64,000 nucleotides of DNA from Trichosphaerium sp. ATCC 40318. Taxonomy: Eukaryota; Protista; Tubulinea. A program made the position numbers and the translations under genes. Positions 6,429 to 59,292 of this stretch are shown one piece after another; position 1 is the stretch's first letter; the number at the start of each line of letters is the position of its first letter. The stretch lies in NCBI GenBank assembly GCA_038496445.1, contig JALMLS010000612.1:248001-312000 (forward strand), given 5' to 3'. The notes below the pieces were generated by a model. The model was not told where the DNA came from and searched no databases. It was given only the letters and a program-made list of their open reading frames with translations.

Positions 6429-6945
6429 AGTGTTTTTTGGTATTTGGCGTTCTTGAATCCTCATCACAGAAAACTCATTGTTTTTTGCTGCTTACGTAAT
6501 CAAACATATCTCGGATATTTTTTGGTTTAATAGCATATGGCATACTTTGTATTTTATCTTTAAATATTCTCCGAATGAGAGTGTTTTCTTTGTGTAATTT
6601 ACAGAACGTTACTATTTAACTACTAACTGCTTGTTTTTCGGCTGTTCTAATATCTTCCTGAACAAGGCTGATAAGACCATAATGGCCTTTGTTATTAGAG
6701 ATGGATGGGAAACTGCAATAGTGAAAAGTACGAAATTTATAACTTCATGTTTCTTTGTTAACAATTTCGGTTTTCCATACCATCTCTGTTGCCATTTTTC
6801 CGTTGTACGATGTCACTTAACTTGTGTCGTTTGCATCTTTCAGGATAGCTACAATGAGTCGTAACAATTCTACAATTCTATTGTGGGATGGTTCTTCAGA
6901 AAGTCGTTTTAAGCACGTGTTTAAGTTTCTTCTTTCAAGATACAC

Positions 6946-9900
6946 ATGAGATCACCTGCGCGAAGTAAAAACAAACACAGCAGATGGAAGAACTTCCTTG
7001 CAGGCGCTGCAAAGAAGAGGGATGAAATTAAGCGTAGAAAGAGTTCTGCACCAATAATAGTAGCTATACTCGTCATTACAATAGCTTTCAACTACAACCA
7101 AGCACACCGGACTTTGGTAATTTTTCAAAAAAAAATTGGCTACGTGTTAATTACTTATGTAGCGTACAAGAGATAACGCATTCTTGGTGGCTGCTACGAG
7201 CCTTGTTGTATCAGGAATACTTTCGTTTGTAACATCGCTATTATTTGGTGTATTCTGCGTTGAAGAACAGTGTAAGGGTAAAAAAGCAAAGACAACACCC
7301 TTTCTGCACACGTGTTTGATAGCTCTTTGTCAGTTTGGGTAAGGACTTTATTTCTTTCTTCATTTCGTACCTAACGATGCGTAGATCTACTATATTGACT
7401 CTACTTGTTCTTCAGAGGAACCCAGCGTTATACCCAGTGACTCTAGGCAAGTATTAAAATTACACAAAGATAGTTTTTTTCTGATCTTTTTTCTAGCTGG
7501 CGTAGCGCCATTCGCATGTTGTTTCGTTCTTATCTACGCCAAACAACCTTTTGCAAGAATTACTTTTATTACAACTGGATTGTTGTTTATAGACATAGTC
7601 GCCGTGTACATGCGCGGTAACATAGTAGGTACGAAAGGCATAGCGTATTTTTGTAGTTATTTTCGAAATGCTAAAACAGTGAAACATAAGATATCCTATT
7701 GGCGAATGCTATGGCTATTTTGAATATTGCTAGTATAGTCCTATTAAAGAGATACTCCTCTCAGATGATGGGTGCATGGAAGACTATTTCTCGCGTCATA
7801 ACGTACAAAATGATAAAAAACCTCCGACGATACAATCACACGTGATTGTTTTCGTATTTTTTTGAATAATATTTATGCTATGATTAGTTTCACTGCAGTA
7901 GCTGCTCTTCCTGTTATGATTGTGTATGCTTACTTTGAGTACCATATTATTTCCCCTGAAGAGAAGTTTTATTTACACCCTGGGTTTGTGGGCCACACAG
8001 CAATATTCGGTACGCACTACTCTCAAACACTACTTAAACTGAAAATTTTTAGGCCTATCCATCTTTGCTGTTCAACTTGCATCTGTGACACTCATTTATA
8101 TGGTACGTCTATCTTAGTAAAAATCGCTTGATTGTAATACTTGGAAGGTTATGGCTGTCAACTATGGACTTGCTTTGGGTGCAGCAGGTATTCTTGCCCT
8201 TACAATGGACTCTGTTTTCCCAAGTACGCAGGAGCTTGCTCCAGAGAATCAGCACTTTCTAACAGTTTGGGTAGGTGGCGAACCAAGTACAATGGCACAT
8301 CGAATAGTGCTTGCGATAGCTTCTGAGATATTACTTATTCACTACTTGTGTCATCCACCAACGAACGTTTTCAAACCACATAAGAAAATATTCAAAAAGA
8401 AGAAGAAATCAGTATATATCGGTATAGCTATTGGGACTACTATCATAATAGCGCTACTAATAGCACCTTCATATACTCGCCAAGCTGTTACTGAACCAAT
8501 GAATGCCTCTACACCAGATTCCAATCATATCCAAGGCAATGAAGTTGAACCAATGAACACTGGAGTTACAGAACCAGTTAATACAAAGCCAAAACAAGGA
8601 GGTGTTGATTTGTTGAACTCAAAGCCGACAGAAAAACCAACGGAAAAGCCAACGGAAAAGCCGACGGAAAAGCCGACAGAAAAACCTCTGCCGGACAACA
8701 AAGATAAGGCCACTTCAACACATGCTGGGATAATAAGTACTTCAGCACCTACATCGCCACCAACTACTGGGGCTTCTGCCGTAAACCCTCTTTTATTGAA
8801 TACAACCAAAGCATCTAAAGGTCTAACAAGGGACGTACAAGACGGTTATGAGTTTTTATATAGAAAAAACATAATGATTATTATACCGCCACATTATTTT
8901 GTTGATCCTTGTTCGGCTCTTAGACTATCAGTACGTTTGAAAGTTTTTTCAAAACATATTTGTTAATATGTTTGTAGGGATTTCAAGCTGTTGTAACGAG
9001 TGTTGGTGCAAAATATGAGTTGTGCTCGCTTGGAAGAACGTTTACTGATAGTCCGCCATGCTCGTCAAAGGACTTAACAAGCTATGACATGGTGTTTGTT
9101 GTTACTTCTGGTAAATACAAGAAAACGTTTTCTTTTTTGGTTTTTCTTGGTTTTCATTCCTACCCTAGAAATATCTACTACTGTGAAAATAGAACAAGAA
9201 AGAAGGGAAAAGGATTTGGTGTCAAGTCTTGATGATTTGCGTAAAACTCAACCTGAAGCAAATTACATTCTTCTTGGAGTTCCAAAGTTAAATCCAATAC
9301 CTCAGAGTGGATTGCTGACATTTGTTGGTACCATCACGAGAATGCAAGTTATAGTGCATTCAACAACACAAAACGAGAACCTTAATAAGCACCTCGATGG
9401 CGTCAAACCCATACTTGTTAAAATTGATCCTTCTTACTACAACAAACGTACGGATTCTCTATTTTTTCTTATTTTTACAGTTTTTAGTTGGAAATCACGT
9501 TCCAGCCAAAATGGATGTGTTTTGGAACATGCAAAACGACAGTGTTTCTAAACAAGATATCATACAAAATGCATTAAAAATCAAAGAGATATTCCAAAAA
9601 GAGGCACCTGGAGGAAGCCTCATCATTGAGGTAATAATTTAAAGATGTTAACTTTTTTTTTGAACTAACATAGTCGTATAGGATATAAACGCTTGTACCC
9701 TTTACGAAGATGTTGATCAAACAATTAGGAAGTGTATGCATTTTCACGTGACTTTACTTGGAAGTGCAAGAGTGATTGTAGCTGAAAGGAAATGCGTACA
9801 CACATATGCTGGTATTTCTTATTAATTCTTATTCACTTTCATCTTTAACTCTATGTCTAAGCGCTCATTGGCATACCCAACGTTCTTGTAGAAACAACAA

Positions 9901-14375: not shown

Positions 14376-15392
14376 TTATACACGTAATGTCAATAACTTT
14401 ATAATAGATGGGGTTTTGATTTGCTTCATTCCGCTTGGTTTACGTGGTTGTCCGTTTGTTTTCCACTGTTTTAGAGAACCAACAATAATGTCATTAGAAT
14501 ATTCACACTTACATTCTAGTGATTGTTGGCCATTAGCATGCCACTCCTTACACACACCGCACTTCTTATTATCTTTGAAGAAATAATCACCTTTGATTTG
14601 TCCTGTAGAGTACCACGTTTTGTATTGCCCATGCAAACAATTATGACGGAAATATGCCATCACTTGTACTTGCCCATTGGCATACCAGACTTGTGTCAGT
14701 CCTTCTCTGTTCCCTTTCTTGAAGATAGCTCTACAATAGATCTGCCCAGTATTATAATAAGTACAGTGTTCGCCTTCCATGATACCATTAACAGAGCAGA
14801 AGTGAGAAGCAAGCTGACCGTTCTCAAAAAACCGTTTTTGATCACCGTGTTTAACACCATTTAAAAATTTGCTATGCTCTTGAATCTTTCCTGAACGATA
14901 CCATACTTTGTAATCTCCTTCCACTTTATGATTTACATAGGTTATTTGCTGTATTAATACCTTTGTTTTCGTATCAAATACCCTGTACTCACCAGAATAA
15001 CTGTGCAAATTTTTCATTAAACATTCTGTTTTAATGTCATAATTAAGTCTTTCCCATTTATAACTATCTCTATCCCACCTCTCTGACAAGTATTGTGTTC
15101 CCTTTTTCCATATTCCTGTCGGCTTCAACTGAGCGTTGAATCTTGTCTTCATTGCTGCTGTCTTGTTCAAAAGTGGCCAGGTGTAACTGACACTTTTATC
15201 AAAAGTACACATGTATTGTTGTATTTCTGGTGGCAAAGAAACAACACTGAAGCGTTCATAGAAGAGCCAACTCTTAAAATATCGAAACAGCTTGTATATA
15301 TACAATAGTATTGACACAAACACTAATAACATCGCCCAGGTAGCGACATTTGTGCTTGAAAGCAAAATCAAATATGCCACGTCAAAAAGCAT
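14376..15392 (-). CDS. Intronless membrane-anchored F-box-like / MORN-variant (YwqK-like) repeat protein
   Basis: TM segment, then F-box-like SLPPEIQQYMCTF, then ~7 24-aa repeats of the type G.YK.WY.NGQ (e.g. HGQYKTWYSTGQIKGDYFFKDNKKCG). Start placed at ATG 15392 because the longer ORF (15617) overlaps the divergent gene. Confidence 0.8.
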   Translation of the reverse strand: MLFDVAYLILLSSTNVATWAMLLVFVSILLYIYKLFRYFKSWLFYERFSVVSLPPEIQQYMCTFDKSVSYTWPLLNKTAAMKTRFNAQLKPTGIWKKGTQYLSERWDRDSYKWERLNYDIKTECLMKNLHSYSGEYRVFDTKTKVLIQQITYVNHKVEGDYKVWYRSGKIQEHSKFLNGVKHGDQKRFFENGQLASHFCSVNGIMEGEHCTYYNTGQIYCRAIFKKGNREGLTQVWYANGQVQVMAYFRHNCLHGQYKTWYSTGQIKGDYFFKDNKKCGVCKEWHANGQQSLECKCEYSNDIIVGSLKQWKTNGQPRKPSGMKQIKTPSIIKLLTLRV

Positions 15393-15503
15393 TCGCCTGC
15401 GACCGCCAATGCGTAGAGTGGCGTTTGTTGAAAAGAAAACAAAATCAACTAAAAAAGAAAACCGTTGAATTTTTGTTTGTGAAGTACAAATTTGCTGTAA
15501 GGC

Positions 15504-17703
15504 ATGGCATCTTTGCCCTGGGGACAACATTTTCCCCCTCGCCACTTCCCAAAGATACAAGCCATAAATGTACGCCAACTGAAGCCCAAACCTAAACCAA
15601 AGCCCAAAATTGTACATACATGGGCTTCAAGATGGCCATATGTACTTGTGGTTGTATTGGTTACCCTAGGAATGGCAGGTATCGGAAACTTGTTATGGTA
15701 TTGGTGGAGGCATTACAGCCAACAAAGGAAGCTCGAAGCGGCGTTGTACGCATATTTGAGCCGGTTGTCAAACATTAACGCTCATTTTGAAGGAAAAAGA
15801 CTCACTTACGCTCACGCGCGCAGCCTGAAGACCGTATGTCTGTTAATTGCGCAAGCAATCTAATTTTTTAAACAGAAGATGAATTCGACGTTGTAGTTGT
15901 TGGTGCAGGTCCAGCTGGAGCTACATGCGCGTATTATCTTGCAAGAAAAGGTTTAAAAGTATTACTTGTTGACAAGCAGACATTTCCTCGTGACAAAATC
16001 TGTGGAGGTACGCATCGCATTTTACAACGCGTCAAGCTCTTAAGGTACTTCGTGGCCTTATTTTAATAGATACTTTACACCCTTTGGCACAACAGCATCT
16101 TAGAGAAATGGATATTCTTGATGACTTGCTTCAAGATGGAAACACAGTGAATTGGGTTCGTCTTATTAATCTCTTGGCGAAACCGTGACGCTTCTTAGCT
16201 AAAACAAAGGGGATTCGTGTCACCAAATGGAAGTAGCTTTGTGGCTCCTGTTCGCCTTCAATCGCCTAAAGATGGTGTATTGGTTGTACAGAGGATTATT
16301 CTAGACGAAAGAATTGTAGAGGCTGCCAAACGTGTTGGAGCGTTTTTCAAAGATAATACTTCTGTCCGTGTACGTTCGTTGTCGATGTATATTTCCTTTT
16401 TGGTAACTTTGTCTTAAGTGGACCGAGTACTCTCAGACAGAACAAATGTGGAGTATTCACGTGAACGGACCAAAAGGTTTTGAAAGTGCGTACATCATTT
16501 GTGATTGTTGATGAAAACAAAAACGTTTATTCATTACATAGAAACAATCAAATGCCACGCTCTCGTAGCAGCAGATGGTGCCTCGTCATACATAGCCAGA
16601 AGTCTTAATATTGTTAAAACGTACGCAAATGTCTTTTGTACCTTTCTATTTATGGTACATTCAACAGGAAACCTAATGGCATAGCTGGACGTTCTATTAT
16701 AAAGGTGAGATTCTTTTTTTTTTCTTGTTCTTTCAACTTAGTTGGTGGTTTAGGCAGGAAGTCATGAGTGTCGCGCAGATGAACTTTTCTTCTACTCAAA
16801 GTATATTGCTGGAGCTGGACACGCTCACATTGCAAAGGAAGTTGGAAATTTCTTGAATTTCACTTGTTTTCTTGTATCAGGTAATTGATTTGGTTGAACC
16901 ACGTGATTGTATTCCTTAGTTTTTATTTTTTGTCTAGGAGACTCTAAACCCGCTCCAAAAGTTGAAACATTAGTACATGTATATGACACGCTAAAAACAC
17001 GTGACTTGAGCGTAAAAAAGGTTTTAGGTGCCTCAGTTGATTGTTCACAATTTAAAGTAAGTTTTCTGTTGTTCTTTTTTTTGTTGTTTACATTGTAATG
17101 TTCGGTAGATGGCATCTTTAAGATGTGGAGGCGTACCAAAAAGCTATGGACATGCTTGCCTCGTTGTTGGAGAGGCCGCTGGTCAGGTGAGCAAAAACCA
17201 ACAGTGCTGTAAAAAGCATCTCTAATATTTTTATAGGTTGATCCTTTGACAGGTCATGGTATTCACCTGGGGATGGAAGGCGCTAAGATTGGTAATGATG
17301 AGAAATATCATTTCCCTTAAACTGTTTTTATTAACTATCTGCTCTAGCTGCTGACACTCTTGAGCGTGCTTTCAAGCTTAATGATTTTTCTGAAGAACAA
17401 TTGAAGTTATATCAAAAAAAGTGGAAGAGTAAGATGAACCGCGATTTTTATTGGTAAGAGAAACTTTTGAATGTAGCAATCAATTTTGTGATATTCGAGT
17501 TTTAGGTCAAGATTTATTGTTGATCTTGCAACATACCAATCGAAGCATTTTTCGCTTAACGGCCGTTATTTTTAATTAATGTCAAAAAATAGGCAATGTC
17601 TGGTGTTAGATCAAAGCTAGAATTGATATTTTGGTTTCTGCGACCTGACGTTATTGTTCTCGTGTTCTACTACGCTCTTAGTCGCTTTTCTGATGATACA
17701 TAA
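15504..17703 (+). CDS. Geranylgeranyl reductase-family FAD-dependent oxidoreductase with N-terminal membrane anchor
   Basis: [47 protein letters not shown] and C-terminal WFLRPDV; ~13 introns. Confidence 0.85.
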
Positions 17704-24288: not shown

Positions 24289-27200
24289 TTAATATTGTCT
24301 TGCACGTGCTCTTCTGACAGCTTCAGCAATTGTCTTCAAAATACGTGTTTGTTTCTCTGTGTTCTTAACTCTGTGACGTAGACTCAATCCAGAAACAGCT
24401 TGCATGATATGATTCAATTGGTCTCCAAGACCAACAGCAGCAGAAGCTACTTGACCACCAGAATCGGTACCTAAAAACGAAAAAATTAACAAGAAGAATA
24501 CTTGCAGAGAAATGTTTTTTATGGTTTTTGCCTTGCTTAGACAGTCACGTGTTGGAAAATGATTGAAAAATAAAATGCAAGCATGTTCTTTACCTTCAGC
24601 GGCCTTTACAGCTGCCAAGATCTTCATCTGTAGTGCTTTATCATTAACAATCTTGCTACCGTTATCTAGCTTGTCTTTTGTCTCAGGGTCATCACAGTGA
24701 CTCTTCATAGCCCTCATGAGCTTTCCTAGATCTTTAGAAGCTATAGCAATATCGCGAGCGCTTGTAAGTAATTCTTCTCCACCCAATAGTGGTTTTCCAG
24801 GACCTATAAAAGACAAACAACATAAGCATCACAACAAAAAAACCCCAAAAAACCGTAAAACTACGATCATCAAAACATTGGCCGTACCGAATTTACTTTT
24901 AATCTTTTTCTGAATTTGTTCGAGGCTTGCAAAGAACTCTTTGATCATATTTCCAAGCTCATCATCCTTTTCCTCCTATTAAACAAAAGTAAGAAAGCAG
25001 AATTCCAAAACTGATTTCTTCAGTTATCTTGGCTTTACTTACTTCCTTTGCACGTGTTGCTTCATCCAAAAGACGCAATGCTTCTGACATATCGGCACCA
25101 GTACCATGTGTAAGTTGTACAACCTTAGTAATGAACGTGTTAATAAAAAAGAACTTCACATTTTCAAATTTTTTTGATGAGAAAGTGACGGGATACCTTT
25201 GTTACAGCCTTAGCAAGCTCTTGTTGTGCGTCCTTGTAGCGACCTTGAGCAAGCAAGTCATCTGGATCTGCTGCAGCAAGCTTTGAAGCATCAACAAGTT
25301 CACGTGCCCAAGTCTTTAATAATCGTTAATCTCTACAACTGCAAACATTTAGCGTACTCTAATGTCTTCGCCGGCAGCATGTACTTGCGCGAGGAGGTCT
25401 GGGTCATTTTCTACACAAAGATTAGTATTTTTTAAAGATGTCTAATGGGGAAACGTACGTGCTGCGAGTTCTGCTTCACGTAAGATCTCCAAGGCAGCTA
25501 GAGCCTCTTCTTTAGCAGCTTTGACGAGCGCTGGATCATTAGGATCGATTTGGAAGTACATTTCGTCGAAAGTATCAGCCTGGTTTTTAATAAGCACGCC
25601 ATGAAATAGTTTAACAAAATGCGGAGAGACGTACGACAACTTCTTGTGCGTCAATAAAAACAGGAAGTGCGTTGAAACCTGCTGGTGTTGTTTCAAGTGT
25701 TCTGGCACGGTTAACAGCGTCGACAAGATCGTCGTAAGCGCCGTGAAGCTTCTTTTTATTGGCTTCTGAAGGATCTCTTGCAGTGTTGCGTGCAGCAACA
25801 ATAAGGTTGTGGCTAGCTTTTTTGAGTTCATCAGCGGCTGCAAGGATTCTCTAAACAAAAAACATGAGATAAAAAACAGAGATGGAAGCAAAAAGTCATG
25901 CTTGGAGTGGGGCTCGAACCCACGCGTTGAATTCAACAAATGATCTTAAGTCACTCCCCTTAACCAACTCGGGCATCCAAGCAACTGTGTTGATGAAGAA
26001 GTAAAAATTTGTGGATATTATCCCAAATAGTTTCGTTGAAAAGTCGTTTTGTGTTAATTAGCTTGTAGCTCTTTGGAGGCCAGAAGATCATTTGTTATTT
26101 CTAATTAGCGTTTATGACGAACACACGCACCCTTTTTTCTTCTGGATCTTCTGTTCTGTTGGCAAGATCTACCAAATCTTGGTGTACGCGCTTGGCTACT
26201 TCAACAAGTCTCTGTGCCTCACGTAGTAAAGCATCAGTATCTCCTCGCTCAGCAGCATCCATTACTATAGCGAATTAACAAATTGAAACAGATTAAGTTC
26301 CTTACATCTTTTTGCTACGTTTAGAAGAGCATCAGTTGCAACATGAATTGGGTATTGATCCTGAAGAAAAAATCAACACCTGCTTTGAACAACCTTGTAT
26401 TAATAGTGAATCAACGCACCATATCATGCTTCTTGGTTCCGAGAATGAGACGCTTTGCTGCTTCAAGCATACCAGCATGTCCTACAACAGCATCGCGCTT
26501 GTTCTGCTCTGTGGCACCGTCTCTTATTGTGCTGTTGCCAGCATTCAAAAATTGATCACCGTATTGGGCTAAATCCTCAATGGCTCCCTTAATAAATTCT
26601 TGACGGACCTGAAGCAAGTCTTGTAAGCAACTGGATTTTGGGTGTGCACAAATAAACCAAACGTACAACATCCTTCTCCTTGCTGAGAGCGTCTCTTCCA
26701 AGGCGTGCAAGGTCATCTCTGTGTTTTCTGACATGAGGCAGCTCTCCTCTTGTTTGAGGTTAATTTAGAATGAGATGGAACCAAAAAAATATATCAAACC
26801 TAATGGCATTTTTGTCATCTTGGAGAATAGCTTCTACCAAAATATTGGCGTGCTTAGATAGCTCCTTTGCGCTTTCAAGCAATTTTCTAATAAACTCAAG
26901 AGTCTCCCAGAAACCAACCATATGATCTTGTTGCTCTAGCTTAACAGCACTACGAGAAAAAAATTATTAACAATATCTAATCATTATTTTCTTTTTTTTG
27001 TAGTTTTTGCGCTTCAGCTTAATTCCAAACGCATAAAAAAAATACGACAACGTACCTGACAATGAGTTTATAGCCCTCAGATATACGTTGAGATAAATCA
27101 GTAAATTGACCACGTAATTCTTGTTTGTTTGGTCTATCAACAATATGCTTTGCAGCCTCTACGATTTCAGGTGATAATTCGCGAATCTCATCAGAACCTA

Positions 27201-33808: not shown

Positions 33809-35194
33809 TTACGCATTTGGTACACGAGTAATAGGTCCAAAGCGGTTGCCTGACTTCTCTTGTACAATTGAAAATAATTTACGTAACTTAAGTACACCCT
33901 CCTCTTCAATAGGGTCATGTTCTGTAATGATACTATTAGCCAAATCTTGTACTTGTCTACTTGGAAATAATTTTAGGACAGCTTTTTGATACTTCAAAGC
34001 AAACTCTCTAGTGTACTTAGGTGCCTATAAAAATAAAAATTAAGCCATCAACATAACAAATATATATTAAACGAAATTACAATTCCAAGTCAAAATGTGA
34101 TAGAATGATGCGGCGGGTAAACAACTCTTTGAAAAAAAATGTCGTATTTTTTCCTTTCAAAAACTTTCCGCTTTTTTTCTTCTTTATCGCTCTTTGAAAA
34201 TAAAAACGTACGTCAACCATTTTTTTGCTTATCTCCAATAGCTGCTCTGATGTCTCTACACATTGTAATAAAATTGTAAAAGTTCCAATAAAAGGCTTCA
34301 ATCTTTTTCTCTTCAACTCAGAAAAATGGCTAAATGCCTCTGCTGAATCACCAGCCTTAGCAGCAATACCAATGATAGTATTAAAGTTCGCTAAAGTTAC
34401 TTTTACAGGAGATTTTTTTAAATTCTCAAAAACTCTATAAGCCTTCTGATACTTCTCTTGCTTAGCGCAAGCCGTCATTAGATTATTATACGTGAACTGA
34501 TCAGGTTCAAGACCAGCAACGTTTCTAAGGTCATCAACAAGACGGAAGGCAGTATCAAGATGAGCTTTTGAAGAACCACAAATCGAGATCAAAGTATTGT
34601 AGTTTTGCAAGTCTGGGTTTATGCCATCGGCTTGCATCTTTGCCAACAACCCCAGGGCTAGTTCTGGGTCTTTTGAGTACTTTTTAAACATAATGTTGTA
34701 TGACGTGTTGTCTGGTTGTACTCCTTGTGATTGTAGTTGCTCAAATAATGCTGTAGCGTATTCTTGATCTTTACAAATGTTTAAAAGTACGTTGTAAACA
34801 CGTAACTCTATTTTAACGTTGTTTTGCTCTAGCCATTGAAACTCCTCGAGTGCTACTTCCCAGCTGTTTACTTTTGGCATTGCCCAAAGGTAATTGACAG
34901 CGTGGTTGCATGTATCCCTTAGTTTTAACCTGTAATAGCGATCTAGTACATCCTGTGATGAAATACGCGGGCGCTTTATCTTTTTGGCAGCTTTCTTTTT
35001 GTAACGGCCTTTAGGTGCTACCACAATCTTTTTTAGTACATAAAAGCGCGTATGAGCTCACCATCGGTTATGTTGTACGATCCTTGTAAATTCTCGAGCG
35101 ATAGGCGTGTAAAACTTATATAGCGTGTACCCAAAGCCTCTTGGCGCGTCTGCGAACCACCACGAGAGATACGGAGCTGTTGGAAGCGAAGCAT
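33809..35194 (-). CDS. P-class pentatricopeptide repeat protein, probably mitochondrial
   Basis: 35-aa repeats, e.g. PDQFTYNNLMTACAK and PDLQNYNTLISICG; Arg-rich N-terminus MLRFQQLRISRGG. Confidence 0.9.
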
Positions 35195-41851: not shown

Positions 41852-42996
41852 TTACTGTCTGAGATTAGGTAACAATACAGAGCACTTTTTTGATATATTT
41901 CTGCATTCACTGACACTAAGATAAACAGCTGACGTCAAATACTTGATACCCTCATCAGTTATACTATTACATGAGCGCAATATTATTTTTTCAACGCTTG
42001 CTAGTGCTTTCAAACCATTATCAGTAATGTTAGTATAAGAAAGATTAAGTGTTTTAACAGAATTTAGGTGTTTAATCCCTTCATCAGTTACCTTTGTATT
42101 ACTCAAATTGACAACTGTTGAATGTGCCAAATACTTAATACCTTCGCCTGTTATATTATAGCAATGTATCAAGATAACTTTGTTAATACCACAGAGATGT
42201 TTAAGAGCTTTATCTGTAATCTTTGTATAAGACAAATTGATTTCATTTAAAACGTTTCCATTTCCATTAACAAATGCCTCTATCCCAATATCCGTCACCT
42301 TTGTGGCCTTCAAAGTAATCTCATGAACACCTTTAAGCTGTGATATACCATAATCTGTTATACTACCACAATGACTAACAATTATAGAGAAAGCACCACT
42401 TAATCCCTTTAAGCCATCATCTGATATGTTCGTGTGACTTACATCTACTGTATGTACACCGGCAAGGTATGCATATCCTTTACTACTGATGAGATCACAA
42501 CCATAGATATCTGCAGTATGAACTCCAGCAATTGCTTTAAGTCCTTTGTCTGATATTCCGTGGCAGTCCCAAAGCATTACAGAGTGTACTCCCGCTATTG
42601 ACTCTAGACCCTCATCTGTTATTGTGAAATTATTTTCAACACTAATGTTCTTAATACCCTTTAATGCTTTTAATCCTTTGTCTGTTAGTGTAAAACTGCC
42701 TGAAGAAAAATCAATTATTGTGTTGTTTAGATGTAATACTGGGCTGTTACAAACAAGTTCAAAGCCTTTCTGAGATTTTATGTAAATAGCTTGATAGCCA
42801 ACATGATAATGTATCACGTTTGAGAGTGTCCAACATGATTGTGCTGCAGCATATCTTGTATCATCCAAAAACGTTAAAATACCAGCCAAAATCTCTGTAG
42901 GCATGTCTAGTAACGCAATCGAAGGTTGTACTCTTTAAAAAACAAACATTTAGTTTCTAATAGGTAAAACAATACCACAACATACGTAGCTTGCAT
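41852..42996 (-). CDS. F-box + LRR protein (ITDxGLxxL-type repeats)
   Basis: LLDMPTEILAGILTFL F-box; ~11 repeats such as ITDEGIKYLTSAVYLSVSEC; single short 5' intron, then a ~1.08-kb exon. Confidence 0.88.
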
Positions 42997-50155: not shown

Positions 50156-50578
50156 ATTTACAAAAACCTCAACTTTTTGTAAATTACGTTCAAAAAAACA
50201 ACAGATTTTTTAACGCCTATCTTTAAACCGATCAAATTAGGAAACGCGATTGACGTTGTTTTTTTTTTTGAATGCGTGTAATTCCGTAGGAGCCTTGCTA
50301 TTCGCTATGGAAAGCTATTGTTGTTATTGGCGGGAGTGCAATAAAGGGCAGATATTGTCTGGTGTTATTTTTGAGTTCAAAAACCCCGACAGCCTTGTAT
50401 TACTTTTTTTGACCTTTTAGTGCATTGTGAGACGTTTAAGGTGATAGCTTATACCTCCCCGTAGGCACCAGTAGAGTTTTTGCATATTGGGATTGACCCA
50501 CAACGCAATTAGTTCAAAAAAATAAAAACTTCGCTAGTTTTTGTTTTTATTGTCACCTATTGGTAGTTGTCGCTTAAG

Positions 50579-52146
50579 TATCGCTTGGTAGGACTAGAAA
50601 GAGTGATGTGCTTGATAAAAACGAAATCATAAATGCGTATGTCAAAAACTGTACGAAGAAAATGTTGTGGAGTAACTCGTCGCAGTTACAGGCCGTTTGA
50701 GATTCTTACCCAATCCTGTAATACCATTCGCATTAGCTGAAGAGCAAAGAGCTCATATTAGCTCTACACTGAGCAAACAGCTTAAAGTGAAGGTACTGGA
50801 GGACTTTTACAAAGTAACGCGCAAACGTATCGATAAAGTGGGCGGTGATGCGTTTGTTAATGTTAAGCTATCAATGAGTACCATTTTAATCAAATTGTAC
50901 CCAGAGTACAACTGGAATGTTTATGGTTTCAGGTACGTTGCCTAAAGTCACTGTACATCTTTTAAATCGCGTAGTTCTGGCGTACCAAATGGTTACTGGG
51001 ATGACATTGCCCATCACAGACATTTTTTTAATTATTTTGGTGAGATGTTCTTGTTTCATGATTTAGACTGCTGGTACGATTGCAGTGTAGACTTGATAGC
51101 AACTCATGGCGGCGGTGGCGTTATAAATGACAAGTAGGTTTTTTTATTTCTCTTTTTCAAAAAAACGCCATTACTTCGTTACTGACATGCCAAGATACAA
51201 TGGCTCTGTATTCGCGGCGTTAGAAGCAGTGTATCCTGAACGAACATGGAAGCCATGGCTATTCAGGTAGGGTTGGCTTTGTGGAATAAGGTGAAGAACG
51301 TGCTGACTCTTTTTTTTGTTAGACATTCACCAGCACATATTTGGGATTGTTTACGAAATCAAAGGATGATGTGTGATCGTATTTGTGAGGCTATGAAGTT
51401 AAAAATAACAGAAGATATGTATTGCCTAACTACTTATTCATTCATTCAGCATGGTGGAGGAAGTATATTATCGCTAAAGCACGTGGAAGAAATTTAGGAG
51501 ATTACTTTTGTAAATTTTTTGACAAAATCCCTAATTTTTCGGATAGATACAGAGGTTCATTATTTCGCTTGTTGACGGCTGTATACCCAGAGTTTAAATG
51601 GGTTATTTACGAATTCAAGTACGTACTTCATACATGTAAGGCACAAACTGAACCTGGACAGGAGTATTTCCCAAGGGTATTGGAACGAACCCGCAAATGT
51701 CATTGAATTTTTCAAAGGTACGCTATTACAACATTTTGATTTTCGACTATCTCACCGCCCACATCAACCAGATCTCGAAACTCTTCTTGAGATTCAAGAA
51801 CCAAATGACTGGTATCGAGTAGGAAATGCAGTAGTAGGGAAATACGGTGGCAGGTAAGCATAGTACAGTTGTTCTGATGGCCATTACTAACATAATTTTT
51901 CTAGGTCATTGTTAACTAGCAACGGAATCTACAGGTATCCTACGTGCCTGAAACTACTATATAAAGATCATAACTGGGACTGGCAGCTATTTAGATCAAC
52001 TGTAATTCCCAATAAGTCCTCACAAAGGTATATTAGCTAGTAATGCTTTATACGAGTTTTAATGGTACAATAGGGTACTTATATGGTCCTTGAAGACTTT
52101 ATTGACTGCTAACGGTATTTCCGTTGAGCATGAAAGAAATCGTTGA
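50579..52146 (+). CDS. Uncharacterised ~70-aa Trp-rich repeat protein A (4 repeats, no nuclease; 5' end uncertain)
   Basis: Repeats GYWDD...DCWYDC...HGGGGVINDKYNGSVFAALEAVYPERTWKPWLF; ends KSSQRVLIWSLKTLL...TGA 52146. Confidence 0.75.
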
Positions 52147-52256
52147 CTTTGTAATGATTTTAGTGTAAAATAGTAATTAAATACTGCTGTGATAATTACA
52201 TTATGTTTGCTACGCGTAATTGATGCTTATTAGCGTCTGAGACACGCTTTAGGATT

Positions 52257-54798
52257 ATGAGAAATACAGTAGCCAGAAACACAATAAAAGCATCTCCAAA
52301 TGTATTAGCATACCACAGAAAATGTGTTGAGCGTATTGGTACAAAATTAGACATTAAAAATCCAAAAGAATGGAAGAAAGTGTCTCAAGGCGACTTCTCT
52401 CACTTTGGGGGTCAGTTTTTGCTTGACAGGTGCCGTTTATTTTGTCTAAAGTGTGTACCAACGAAACTAGATATGGCACTCTTCGGAATACGCTTTATAC
52501 GTTGTACCCAGATGCTAGAATGTCCATTGAAGAAAACCCAAATTTGTACTGACAACTACATTCAATAACTGTTCTAACGATTCAAGAAATCTGTCCATTG
52601 ATGCGTCTATGAAACCATTTAAAGCACTTGACACAATAGCAAAGAGTCTAGAGGTCAAAACGCTTGGTGATTGGGTGTCTGTTACAGGCCTACAAGTGCG
52701 TAAAATAGGAGGATCTGCTTTGTTGGCACAGTGAGTTTCAGCTTGATACTTTAAGTTAACATTTCTTGGGTATGGAGGATCGTTACAGTCCGCACTACGC
52801 AGTGTATATAGTCAATATGAATATGTTCATAACATGCATGACAGAAAACGCTGTTTATTACGTGCGTTAAGTAGAGAAGGACGTGCCAATGGTATCGAAG
52901 AAATTCATGATTGGTACAATATTCCATATGATGAACTCCAAGACACTCTTATAATACTTGATGACGGGTACAACTATTCGCAGTGAGTGTTTTTAATTGA
53001 TGGATTGTTAAACAGGGAAAGCGTTACACTAAAAGAAGCGTTATGTGAAGTATACTATGATAAGAAATGGGACATGACTAAATTTCCGTAAGTTCTTTTT
53101 TTTGTTTCGTTTTTTTGATAAAACTTGGTTTGCCACTTTCCATCAGTCACTAAGTATTGACTATAGCGGTTATTGGAATAATGATCATGTACAATTGAAG
53201 GCAATGGATAGAATAGCAGAGGCGTTGGGTGTGATGGTTATGGATGATTGGCATAAAGTGACAACTTCGCTATTTCTTGATGCTGGAGGTCAAGAGATGT
53301 TGAGCATGTGCGTTTGTTGGAGTCACATAACGTTGTAAATATAGTTTTATAATATACTTAGATGTCAAGGAGAGATGCCTAGCGTGCTTGGAAAGGTATA
53401 CTCAGGGTATAAATGGAACTGGATAGAGAGGATTAATAATTTTAAGTCTACTAAAGATCCATCATTATTTTACCCTGATTACTGGAAAGACGTGAAAAAA
53501 CAGATGGAACATATAGAAGATATATCAGAGAAAGATAATATTAAAACGTTAAACGAATGGAGCAAAGTGTCGAACGAGAAAATATTAAAGAAAATAAGTG
53601 GTATTCTTAAAATGTTAAGTCATTTTACACTTTTTTATTTTCTCTGTTGCTAATTTTAGAGCCTTAGGTATAATAACTCCTTACAAAATATGTTTTGTAC
53701 TCTATATCCTGATGCTATTGAACATATTGGATGGTCTAAAAAACGTACTTGGAAGGCTCCAAGTCACGTGGTAACGTTCCTGAAAAAAGCAGAAAAAAAG
53801 TTGAATATTCTTGATGCAGAACAATGGTAAGCAGGCTAAAGGTTCTTCGTCTCACTTTTCATTTGAGGTATCGAGTATCGGCACCTCAACTACAACAGAT
53901 TGGTGGAGGAGGATTTATGCCCTATTTTCCTTGGGCTCTTGAAACAATGTATCCAGATAATGAATGGACTTGGCATAAGTTTAAAGCAGGATTCAAAAAA
54001 TCTAATCAAAGGTACTTACTCAACACTTTTTACCATGGTTTTTTTCATTCCAAAATTAGTTGGCTATTGGCATGTGTAAAGAAGATTTTTGATACTTTAG
54101 AAGTTGAGGAGGAGCAAGTCATTGGTGTATTACATGCAACAGGAGCACCACTTGTTGTTGATATTTTTATACCTTTTTACAATATTGCGATTGAGTACCA
54201 AGGCAAGCTTACAAATCAACAATCCGGAAGGAGATGAGAGCGTTCTTTTTGTTCTGCTTTCTTCTGATTGTTATCTAGGTGAACATCATTATCATGATGC
54301 TTTACCACATGCTGCTTCAACACTTGTACATAAAGCGCGTGATATAGAAAAATCACAAGCATGTAAAGATCAAGGTAAATCATCTTTTCTTCTTTTTTTT
54401 CACTAGACTTTAATATTTATTTTCAAGGTTTCACACTGGTTCCTATCCCCTATTGGTACGCATAATTATATTATATTAAATACAAGAGCGATGAGTATCA
54501 TCGTATTTATAATGGTTCTGTCGAACATCGTCATTCCGGCCAGGCTTTAGAGCAACTTAAAGTTTCTACTTTGCGTAATTTTTTTTTTTATTTACACGGA
54601 TTACTAAGGTGGCAAGGTGATATTGATAGCGTAGCTTCAACAATCAAACATTATGCACCCGAAATAGAGATGGATTTTGATTCTAAAACAAAACCACTTT
54701 TAGGAACATCTAGTCCAGTACAACAACAGGGAGAAGGTATGTGACCCTATTCGATCTGTGTATAATGATCTATACAGATACTATACGCCAGAGCATGA
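52257..54798 (+). CDS. Uncharacterised ~70-aa Trp-rich repeat protein B (6 repeats) with C-terminal PD-(D/E)XK / RAP-Vsr-like nuclease domain
   Basis: Repeats as in gene A, then VVDIFIPFYNIAIEYQGEHHY...RDIEKSQACKDQGFTLVPIPYWW. Confidence 0.8.
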
Positions 54799-54885
54799 TG
54801 GCGCCCATAGCGAGTAGGTGACATAAAATAAAAGGTCATAAGCGAGGAGGACGCTCAGAAAGAAAAAAGGAAATAATTGAGTTCC

Positions 54886-57806
54886 TCAAGGTTGTTGTTC
54901 TTCAGTTTTTTTGCGGATTTCTTTTTCCTCCTTTATGATATCAATTATTGAGCTGATTGTATTATGTATAAGTTGTAGATTAACGGTGCTTCTTTCTTGT
55001 GATTTTTCAAGCTGATGGCCCTTCATCTTCATACCAAAGTTGGCCAACTATTAAAAAAAAAACTGTCAACACGAAAAGCAAGTAACCAGTGTCAATAAAA
55101 TAATAAGAATTTGCGCATTGGTGAAATAAACTTTCAAAAAAAAAAAAGGACAACTGGGGCTTGGCGAGGGTAACGCCAATACTCTTATCGTCAATGTTGG
55201 AATACAACATAAAAGATTGCCTCAAAAAGAAGACGAAAAAAAAAAAGAAGAAGCTGATACTTTCATTGACTAAAACGCACTTTTTTTAGCGTTTCTTGCT
55301 GCTTTGCATGTGTATTGTTCTCCCTCATGCTATCGTGGACTTGTTTTGCGATTGTTACTTCTAAAGGGATAACAAGAGATTCCACACGCTTCAAGTTCTT
55401 AGGTGACCAAATACCAATAATCTCAGCTACTCGTTCTCGAAGTAAAAGAAACATCAAGAAATGCGCTGAAGCAACTATAATATCGAATCTAATATACGTC
55501 AGTGTGTTTGTCAATATGTTGATTGGTTCATACCTGTTAGATACATCTGTAGGATTAAGTAGCTTCTCAAAAATATCCAATATTTTTGATGATATAAAAG
55601 GGGATGACGGGATGCTTGGGTCATTGTTTTTGGCCTTCCATGCACGGTCAACTTCTTGTTTGAACTTATGTACAATAACAGATATAACTGATGGGTAAGG
55701 GCAAGCATCAGTGAGCCCTAAATTTGTAGGTTAAAAAACCAGTTCAATTCTCAAAAAGCTAAAAAGAATAAGGTTACCCAGGATTAAATCGATGCTAATG
55801 TCATCTGTATACATTGACATAAAGTCTTTCATAAGTTTCATAGCTTTATCACGCTTATTCTTATCAGGACATTTTACCATCCAATCAATAATAGCCTGAT
55901 AACAAAACCTGTCAAACACAGAAAAAAAAACAATCCAATTAAAAAAAAACGCATCAAAGAAATAGTTTACCTGAACACAGTCAATACTCATTTCAAAATT
56001 TGAAATTGTGCTTATATTTCGTTTCCCAACGGAGGATACTATCTATAAAAAATATGTCAACACATAACAAACCAAAAGCAGAGAGCACAAGCAACAAGAA
56101 AAATAGTAGAATATGAGATCTCATCTGATATTAAATGTTTACCCTTTGAGCCATGTCAATGCCCATAGTCTGTAATCGATGGTCTGTATGCGTTATAAGA
56201 CGTGTGGCATGAGGAATACACATTGGGTAGAGATAATTTGTCTTGTAAATACAAGGCACAGAGCTAAACAGTTCGCTTTAATTAGTTCAAACCAGCAGCA
56301 ATGCAACGTACGTTTTCCCTTGTATTAAAGATAGGTATACAAATGCAGAACATCCTTGTCCCCATACATCAGGATCTGGAGCATTAGATGACTCATCCTC
56401 TTCATCATCTTCGTCATCATCTTCCATATCAAATTCACTAACATCTTTGTCTTCTTTGCTAGCACGCACTGGTGCACTCACACTATTTGAATAATTAAAA
56501 CGGATGTGCATTGTATGAGTTTAAAGGAAGGTGTTTATGGCAAAATGAGGCAGTACCGTATAGCATTAGACTCCCTGAAGAAGTTAAACATTGACATGGT
56601 TGGTACACCAACCGCTTTTATATTGGCCTACAACTCACATTTAGTATACTAATATCATTCGTTGTGTTGTTTTGTTTACCAGTGCTCCTTCAATGTACGT
56701 GTCATTTTTTTTAAATTGTGGTAGACAATAGTAAATAAGGTTCAAAGCAATTCTAAGAACAGCTCGCTTTTTTTTTTGTTCTTTTGAATCAGATGGTATC
56801 CAGCTCCATTTCTCCGTCACTATTTGCACTCATAAGCCATTAAAAACACTTTATACTGTAGATGAATCATGAAAAACAATTGGAGGTGATGAGTAACCTC
56901 TAAATGTAAAACACTCACCATTTATGCTCTTTGTCATTTCACCAACAAGAGCAGCTGTAGAAGGAGCAAGTGTAGATAAAAGTGTATCTAGAGCACGTAG
57001 TTTCTTTGTATCAGGTTTATTGGTATTATCAGCATCATTCATGAACGACACAGAGACCTACGAACAACTTAATACAAGAATAAACGAAGTACAATTGTCT
57101 TGGCTCACGTTTGGTTCTTCGTTTTCATCATCTAGCTCATCTAGATCCGGCATTTGCTCATCATCACGTCCTTGCTCTGAGTTTGCTTGCACAGCACGTT
57201 CGTAGACCCTTGAAACGACGTAGGCGGCCTACATAGACTAAGGATAAAGGTTGGCGGATAGGATAATACCTGATCTGCGAATTCAGCCGAGCGTTTAGTG
57301 AGAGGGCCAATAACTGGTTGTGGAGTTAAAGAAATGATGTACCTCAACTGTCATACCTTTTGATAGCCACAACAGCAAGCTTGCGTGCGTTTTGGGTGGG
57401 TACGGCGCTTCTAACGCTTCTAGAATAAATATAAAAGATTCTCTAGGTTTTGCCAGCGTAATCATATGCTCTAGTGATGCTCGTAGGTTCTCGTGGCGGT
57501 TGACAAGCGCTTAACGGCAATTAACGCTATAGCTATACTTTAAATGTAAATACCGATTACTGGGTGCCAAATCTGCCACAATAGCTCTAGCATATTATCA
57601 CTGTTTTCTGTTGTTGTGTTTTGAAAGAACTGAGCAATGTCTGCTACAAATGTCACCTTACATCATATTAATACTTATTTAAGCGTAGAAATCAATACCG
57701 AAGGCTCATCGAGCTCATTTTGTATTTCAGTGACTAACGGATCAAGACCCTCTTGAAATGCAGCAAGGTCAATGTTGGACTGAACGAGGGTCTTTACTTT
57801 CTCCAT
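54886..57806 (-). CDS. Glomulin/ALF4/Ybp family protein (RBX1-binding CRL regulator)
   Basis: AKPRESFIFILEAL, WMVKCPDKNKRDKA, CPYPSVISVIVHKFKQEV and DIIVASAHFLMFLLLRE resemble conserved glomulin/ALF4 blocks. Confidence 0.65.
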
Positions 57807-58139
57807 ACTCGGTATTGTTTACAAGATTGATATTGTACGTAAACTGATATTTTAACTTCACCCAAGACTGTTAACGACTTTCTTTCACCTCTACATTTTT
57901 CTGATGATTCCTTCTTAATCTTACTCTTAGACTTTTTATATGCCGCGTGCTGGTACTGATACCACTATCGGCTACATTCTGAGGCAATAAATGTCAATTT
58001 CTCTGAAATAGAGCGGGTCTATTAGGCTTTGCCTGCCCTAGAAGCTGTAAATACCGAGGTGTCTACATTAAATAACGTAGTAAGTTGATACCTGTTTTAG
58101 TGATTCTACAATCAAACGAATTGATCTCATTTTGTGCTT

Positions 58140-59292
58140 CTAGCTCTTATTTTTGCTACGCTTTGTCTTAGTACTTCCTATGAGTACTCTGGATTGCTTC
58201 TTCACCATTGGTTCAGGGAAAAGGTTCTTTGAGAACCAAAGCAGTATTCTATAAAATATCAGATCGACCGTGAGATGTGCTTAACTATTACCTTTGAGAA
58301 GATTTTTTGTTCGACAATTTAAACTTTGACCAATCCCAAGATTTATCAGGATGTAACAGTTGTAAACAGTGAGGGTACTGTCCTTTACGAAGTAATGTAT
58401 TACCATGATATTTCTTTACTTCATCTCTAGATATTCTATACCACTCCTGAGGATCCCAAATCTTAAACTCAGACTCCATATCTGATAAAAGAAAAATCAA
58501 CATTGTGACACATGTCAAAAAAAAATTTTGCAATTTCTTTTTTTTTGAACTAACCGCTTAGAAGGGCCTTAACATTCTCACTGTTTCTCCAATACCCTGC
58601 AGAAACTACTTTAAACTTCCATTTTTTCCAAGCATAGTTTGGGTATAAAGTCTCTAGAGACGTCACAAGAGAGTCTTTGTAACTGCGAACCAATTAGCAT
58701 CAAATCCATTCAAAGAATTACGCTAACAAGACGCCACTCACTTTCTGTTCATTATGCTACCTCCGTTATTGTCGTAAACATCTTGACATGTCATTGAGTA
58801 CCAACCATCAAGCGTTTTAATGTTCAAGTTCTTCGCAATGTTATCAAACATTTCTAGTTGGTTGCTTATATCTTGCCAATGCCTGCGCGGTGTTCTCCTA
58901 GTATTTTGTAAGGATTTATAACAATAAAACCGTTCTCACTTGAATTTCCATAATTTCCAATCGTAGTGCGGGTATAGCGTTCTCACAGCTGTGCTAAGCG
59001 ATTCATTGTACCTTCGGTTTGTTTAAAACAAACTTGGTTTATAGCAGTCTCAAACGTACTTTTTCAAGACTCCTTTACCTGCAGTTACATAGATATCGCG
59101 ACTAGATACATTGTACCAATCATCCATTGTTTTAAACCGCAATCGCACGCCAATAGCATCGAAAAGCTGTATTTGGTTGTCAGTATTGTTCCAATGACCC
59201 CAAGAGATGACATGTTGCGCGTCATGTCTTGATTTGGCTACTTCTAGCGTAGGAGCGTACAAAAACTGCCGTTTGTGAGGTATGAACCTCAT
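58140..59292 (-). CDS. Uncharacterised ~70-aa Trp-rich repeat protein C (3 repeats, no intact nuclease)
   Basis: GHWNNTDNQIQLFDAIG...DDWYNVS...YNESLSTAVRTLYPHYDWKLWKF repeats; ends NKKSSQRILLWFSKNLFP. Confidence 0.78.

Follow-up and report, generated by a model that had tools for sequence, protein, structure and literature searches.

Arrays of a predicted four-helix module, with and without a Vsr-type nuclease domain, in three paralogous genes of Trichosphaerium

RAP helical-repeat proteins, which include FASTK/FASTKD, the OPR-RAP proteins of Chlamydomonas and the HPR-RAP proteins of apicomplexans, are built from hairpins of 35-40 residues, in keeping with the two-helix repeats of 34-40 residues that make up PPR, OPR, HPR and TPR alpha-solenoids. 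Modular arrays with catalytic and non-catalytic members are also found among PPR-E/DYW, TALE and PUF proteins, and PPR-E factors borrow the DYW domain in trans. The Vsr, DUF559 and DUF2726 nucleases (structures 1cw0, 3hrl and 3r3p) are bacterial, act on DNA and stand alone or are otherwise fused, while the DUF4046 proteins (PF13255) encoded on Bacillus and Priestia plasmids consist of tandem modules of about 75 residues and carry no nuclease. Here we describe three genes, A, B and C, in a 64,000-nt stretch of DNA from Trichosphaerium sp. ATCC 40318 (the window), which are paralogues within a very large, unnamed protist family and encode arrays of a module of about 75 residues, joined in B to a nuclease domain and lacking it in A and C.

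The window is eukaryotic nuclear DNA of about 37% G+C, rich in short introns, and as such introns interrupt each repeat, A, B and C are read as spliced models, with transcript backing for A only. Three-frame reading and local alignment of the spliced repeats gave 13 modules, four in A, six in B and three in C, with a mean identity of 23% over pairs. The module follows the consensus gyW..nq..d.I..L.IK..DWY.V..GG..lL..Y..SL..L..LYP..W..kF, in which GYW, NQ, DWY.V, GG..LL, Y..SL, L..YP and W....F serve as landmarks. Hidden Markov models (HMMs) built with one gene left out recovered exons of the omitted gene at E 2e-13 to 7e-3 and found nothing in shuffled sequence, and across the whole window the module HMM matched only A, B and C. 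A cap module of a WYR(V/I) subtype closes the array in all three genes alike and is followed by a helix that reads KSSQR, KKSNQ or KKSSQR, depending on the gene. An earlier note on this DNA had counted 13 copies (4+6+3), singled out a terminal WYR(V/I) subtype with a KS(S/N)Q helix and placed the ends of A and C 25-35 residues beyond that helix; the reading, the alignment and the leave-one-out models all confirm the count, the cap and helix recur in every gene, and the proteins end 23 (A, cDNA) and 35 residues (C, model) after the QR. In 9 of the 13 modules an intron immediately precedes the conserved tyrosine of Y..SL, and a second recurrent site falls right after W....F(K/R), between modules (comparison spanning window positions 50900-54000 on the plus strand and 58500-59100 on the minus strand). 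This recurrence of the same two sites suggests array growth through DNA-level duplication of paired exons.

An AlphaFold2 model of the product of A (predicted local distance difference test score 86.7, predicted template modelling score 0.73) is all-alpha, with four helices per module, and on this basis the family proteins are predicted to be rigid all-alpha arrays of four-helix modules ending in the special cap. Their period, 76 residues among the best 153 family members, and the four helices set them apart from the two-helix solenoids and from the short hairpins of RAP proteins, and with PPR-E/DYW, TALE and PUF proteins they share the idea of a modular array without any similarity of fold or sequence. 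Foldseek comparison of the model with the PDB returned nothing at E≤0.001 (best E 0.84) and with BFVD no match, so that the structural check proposed in the earlier note yielded a confident all-alpha model without a PDB counterpart. Single modules weakly resemble helix-turn-helix DNA-binding domains.

The closest relatives of the array lie in bacteria. In the ESM Atlas, bacterial DUF4046 clusters matched over 277 residues with template modelling scores of 0.60 and 0.62, and tblastn with the product of A reached genes annotated as DUF4046 on 43 plasmids of Bacillus and Priestia (E 3e-4 to 6e-3). One such protein, from B. mycoides, contains five tandem repeats of about 75 residues with shared landmarks, in register, and scores 44.6 bits against the family HMM; the motifs P..F/YW, Y..S and L..YP..W are common to both sides. 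The Pfam DUF4046 model spans just the first ~85 residues of the Bacillus proteins and misses the eukaryotic ones, giving no match with the window exons, the product of A or 50 family members. The eukaryotic modules and the repeats of the Bacillus plasmid proteins are distantly homologous. The proposal of an undescribed repeat class therefore stands as regards a real and uncharacterised module and falls as regards its being wholly uncatalogued, given the structural, tblastn and HMM evidence for a distant DUF4046 relative. The gene neighbourhoods of the bacterial relatives, plasmid-borne and beside insertion sequence (IS) elements, are uninformative. On one B. mycoides plasmid (L082, positions 6940-9216) the DUF4046 gene is followed by one for a 758-residue P-loop NTPase (AAA_22/AAA_16), which has a faint PADLOC match to mad8 (E 0.003).

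Only B runs on, after cap and helix, into ..VVDIFIP..IAIEYQG/EHHY..RDIEK..C..G..L..IPYWW, a domain in which D, E-Y-Q-G, H, R-D-x-E-K and P-Y-W-W are retained. In a phmmer search, 105 of the 153 top family members carried this C-terminal domain, nearly always at the protein end, and an HMM built from the domains of those matches recognised the four corresponding exons of B in order, the last two weakly (E 0.1-0.35). The same HMM, in a local six-frame scan of the window, detected no nuclease remnant downstream of A or C. Across 69 aligned C-terminal regions D115, G129, H132, D151 and K154 never vary, while conservation reaches at least 90% at E126, P119, Y127 and P-x-W-W, and B keeps every one of these columns. 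The family domain shows the fold and the D ... E-x-(D/Q)-G-x-x-H signature of Vsr, DUF559 and DUF2726, which Steczkiewicz 2012 (PMC3424549) assigned to a common group containing these three structures, and the C-terminal domain of B is a PD-(D/E)XK domain of the Vsr/RAP type.

Within this fold, the sequences appear closer to DUF2726 and DUF559 than to RAP. Pfam matches among the 69 domains comprised 21 to DUF2726 (E<0.1, best 1.6e-6), four to PvuRts1I_N, two to DUF559 and a single one to RAP (PF08373; E 0.055), which matched no window exon, and the family protein P0050 scored 23.6 bits, against a Pfam cut-off of 24.7. Scores near or under the cut-off, a eukaryotic host and fusion to a long array distinguish the family from the bacterial Vsr, DUF559 and DUF2726 proteins. 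It likewise differs from RAP, in which the catalytic residues are only about 50% conserved (PMC8190603), whereas they are invariant here. The Vsr/RAP-type fold put forward in the earlier note is thus upheld and membership of RAP itself is not.

Gene A is transcribed. A cDNA contig (L001; 1,190 nt, JGI sample 3300016894) aligns with positions 50544-52195 of the window in ten blocks, with zero mismatches and a run of A at its end, and shows nine introns of 42-68 nt spliced out, one of them GC-AG. The first coding exon holds four coding bases (ATGC) and precedes a 49-nt intron (window 50633-50685). A 347-residue protein from the large profile search (P0039) is identical to the spliced product. 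As the polyadenylated cDNA includes the stop 23 residues past the QR, the truncation of A is genuine, and both A (cDNA) and C (model) stop within the first helix region of the nuclease domain, as nuclease-less truncated paralogues. The existence of a spliced cDNA also disposes of the concern that A might be an untranscribed pseudogene. Read-through from A into B, or a single A+B gene, was rejected on account of the poly(A) at 52195, about 60 nt upstream of the ATG of B. An alignment search in which the product of A was mixed with exons of B and C found no close orthologue of A and returned distant paralogues only.

Against 1.84 billion cluster representatives, a profile made from the repeats of the window (alignment A2) matched 8,393 clusters at E≤1e-3, of which 4,414 reached E≤1e-10 and 1,406 E≤1e-30. 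Proteins hold up to 25 modules, with a median of 7 and a median isoelectric point of 9.15 in the best 153. Most members come from metagenomes, two come from a Heterolobosea transcriptome in EukProt, and the Atlas look-alikes carry the labels Discosea and Tubulinea; a nuclease-bearing paralogue of 690 residues (P0062) has a cDNA contig of its own in the JGI sample that also yielded A. Other nuclease-less matches in the family may be gene-calling artefacts on intron-containing contigs. Pfam recognised no consistent family in 50 members and nothing in 18 exon pieces of the window, and identities with Myb_Rap1, SAM_TNK and CH were rejected, as these Pfam matches were scattered and below cut-off. 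A PDB sequence search, phage records and PADLOC gave no match, and a full-text literature search returned no relevant paper on the family. The module is likewise absent from 80 viral loci bearing a related nuclease domain, which hold relatives of the nuclease only.

The coordinates of A and of the models for B and C are collected in Table 1. All 13 exons of the B model are open, and one junction, in module 2, is irregular: GG stands where the repeat pattern would place the acceptor, and the sole GT-AG intron that keeps the frame reaches to 52802 and takes out 11 conserved module residues. The next intron, 52983-53015, is 33 nt long (a 48-nt alternative exists), and with another of 39 nt it gives B two unusually short introns. 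The introns of C are all GT-AG and measure 42-73 nt. The nuclease domain of B has a predicted GC-AG intron at 54203-54278; judging from the introns in A and B, the genome may use GC donors fairly often.

Table 1. Positions of genes A, B and C and their parts in the window
Feature	Position	Strand	Evidence and remarks
Gene A transcript	50544..52195	+	cDNA contig L001; ten exons, then poly(A)
Gene A exons 1-5	50544-50636, 50686-50932, 50975-51133, 51195-51266, 51323-51478	+	cDNA
Gene A exons 6-10	51547-51618, 51662-51717, 51772-51853, 51905-52027, 52074-52195	+	cDNA
Gene A coding sequence	50633-52146	+	347 aa, four modules, no nuclease; product P0039
Gene A GC-AG intron	51479..51546	+	cDNA; donor GCACGT, acceptor ends AG
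Gene A cap module, K-S-S-Q-R helix and 23-aa tail	51666..52146	+	Repeat alignment, P0039
Gene B coding sequence (model)	52257..54744	+	13 exons, 584-595 aa, six modules and nuclease; frame-keeping intron search
Gene B irregular junction	52731..52802	+	Donor GTGAGT; expected acceptor before 52770 is GG, not AG
Gene B cap module	53744..54011	+	Repeat alignment
Gene B nuclease domain	54060..54744	+	Four exons; family HMM
Gene C coding sequence (model)	58140..59292	-	Six exons, 295 aa, three modules, no nuclease
Gene C exons	59292-59060, 59011-58940, 58897-58742, 58682-58555, 58481-58292, 58248-58140	-	Model
Gene C cap module, K-K-S-S-Q-R helix and 35-aa tail	58140..58612	-	Model, repeat alignment

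Elsewhere in the window, all on the minus strand, an open frame at 34077-35024 contains pentatricopeptide-like repeats and may encode another organellar RNA-binding protein, and a tRNA gene (25899-25982; Rfam 55 bits) lies at the edge of a 165-residue open frame (25442-25939). Two long intron-free frames, at 14376-15617 and 41852-42904, encode proteins with MORN-like and leucine-rich repeats, respectively, and a multi-exon gene with acidic stretches occupies 55000-58000, between B and C.

The N-termini are short, the first module beginning near residue 25, and basic, the first acidic residue appearing in A, B and C not before positions 20, 25 and 17, respectively; the composition of B and C agrees with the Arg-rich, acid-poor character ascribed to them earlier. 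Over the family, the first 30 residues contain 8.2% Arg against 4.9% in the rest, and 8.3% Asp plus Glu against 11.9%. Within the module, a polar N-Q-R is conserved at the start of helix 1. We favour the reading, with a probability of roughly 0.5, that the PD-(D/E)XK nuclease of full-length members such as B is nucleic-acid-guided and probably mitochondrial. The basic arrays, the conserved N-Q-R and the invariant active site would together point to site-directed cleavage of nucleic acid, in which the array would recognise a specific site and position the nuclease to cut there. The short Arg-rich, acid-poor N-termini would fit import into mitochondria, a parallel to the FASTK, OPR-RAP and HPR-RAP proteins that other lineages possess. 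A and C might bind without cutting, as blockers, stabilisers or competitors, or else be young remnants.

Several observations weigh against this reading. No position pair resembling a recognition code was seen among 822 repeats, one junction of B lacks a normal acceptor, and the products of B and C are absent, over the length range searched, from a collection of 15 billion proteins, which counts against the reading as far as B is concerned. In addition, the nearest relatives by both sequence and fold are bacterial enzymes that act on DNA; the nuclease could thus cut DNA, and a role in RNA processing is not required. Scans of JGI metagenome contigs with one exon of B and one of C found no copy, in a collection that may not include the sample holding the cDNA of A, and a word search with a 111-residue exon of B gave no match. 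Run X1, which is not recorded as RNA, covers 0.14 of the 9-kb stretch, which would be about the size of the mRNA of A alone. That B and C did not turn up in public data does not disprove their expression.

These same gaps can be read as decay, in which A, C and perhaps B would be young duplicates without a function of their own and the mRNA of A residual. This is a possibility to be taken seriously, if an unlikely one: the truncations remove exactly the catalytic domain, B combines the GG acceptor with introns as short as 39 and 33 nt, neither B nor C turned up in the protein collection or the JGI contigs, the coverage of X1 might be accounted for by A alone, and A has no close orthologue in the search made. 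Yet the frames of A and C stay open through ten and six exons with working splice sites and conserved module residues, the cDNA of A is fully spliced and polyadenylated, and B retains 13 open exons and all invariant nuclease residues. The DNA-acting neighbours, for their part, lend some weight to a role in genetic conflict or as selfish nucleases, comparable to homing endonucleases or restriction enzymes, with nuclear, viral or mobile DNA as the target. The best neighbours in structure and sequence, namely Vsr, DUF559 (3hrl), the homing endonuclease I-Bth0305I, PvuRts1I/AbaSI and DUF2726, all act on DNA, three of them grouped together as noted above (PMC3424549), single modules weakly resemble helix-turn-helix domains, the bacterial relatives sit on plasmids adjoining IS elements, and the family is large, varied and found in tandem clusters with truncated copies. 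We nevertheless doubt this role, in view of the presequence-like N-termini, of genes whose many introns, splicing and polyadenylation are those of ordinary host genes, and of the lack of a PADLOC match and of the repeat in the viral loci and BFVD.

Two further possibilities concern catalysis itself. That RAP went undetected in Amoebozoa and Excavata (Hollin 2021, PMC8190603) leaves a niche which non-catalytic RNA binders might fill, for example as scaffolds for the mitoribosome or rRNA fragments like the HPR/RAP proteins of Toxoplasma; the invariance of the putative catalytic residues, about 50% conserved in RAP, makes such a structural role improbable. The earlier note had further suggested that A and C are specificity-only members which bring in the catalytic B, as PPR-E factors do with DYW. 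A is indeed expressed without a nuclease, and the cap module and following helix are kept in A and C, but no domain or motif for an interaction could be identified, loss of the entire catalytic core leaves the truncated proteins no docking surface, B, although irregular at only one junction, is missing together with C from the public cDNA and protein collections in which A is present, and nuclease-less relatives elsewhere may not be real. Recruitment in trans is accordingly unsupported and very improbable, A and C having the appearance of truncated paralogues.

Beyond the nucleic-acid-guided, probably mitochondrial nuclease that we favour, a more far-reaching reading can be put forward tentatively: the 75-residue module might be a new sequence-reading repeat that guides a Vsr-type nuclease in protist mitochondria or on foreign DNA, with expressed nuclease-less paralogues such as A acting as site-specific blockers or regulators. 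The family comprises thousands of diverged members without a Pfam model, yet its architecture, a helical array followed by a Vsr/RAP-type nuclease, matches that of organellar RNA processing in other lineages, and it may explain the apparent lack of RAP proteins in Amoebozoa and Excavata. To this picture the locus contributes one nuclease-less paralogue as a real spliced and polyadenylated mRNA. If the modules do read sequence, they would constitute a new natural scaffold for nucleic-acid targeting.

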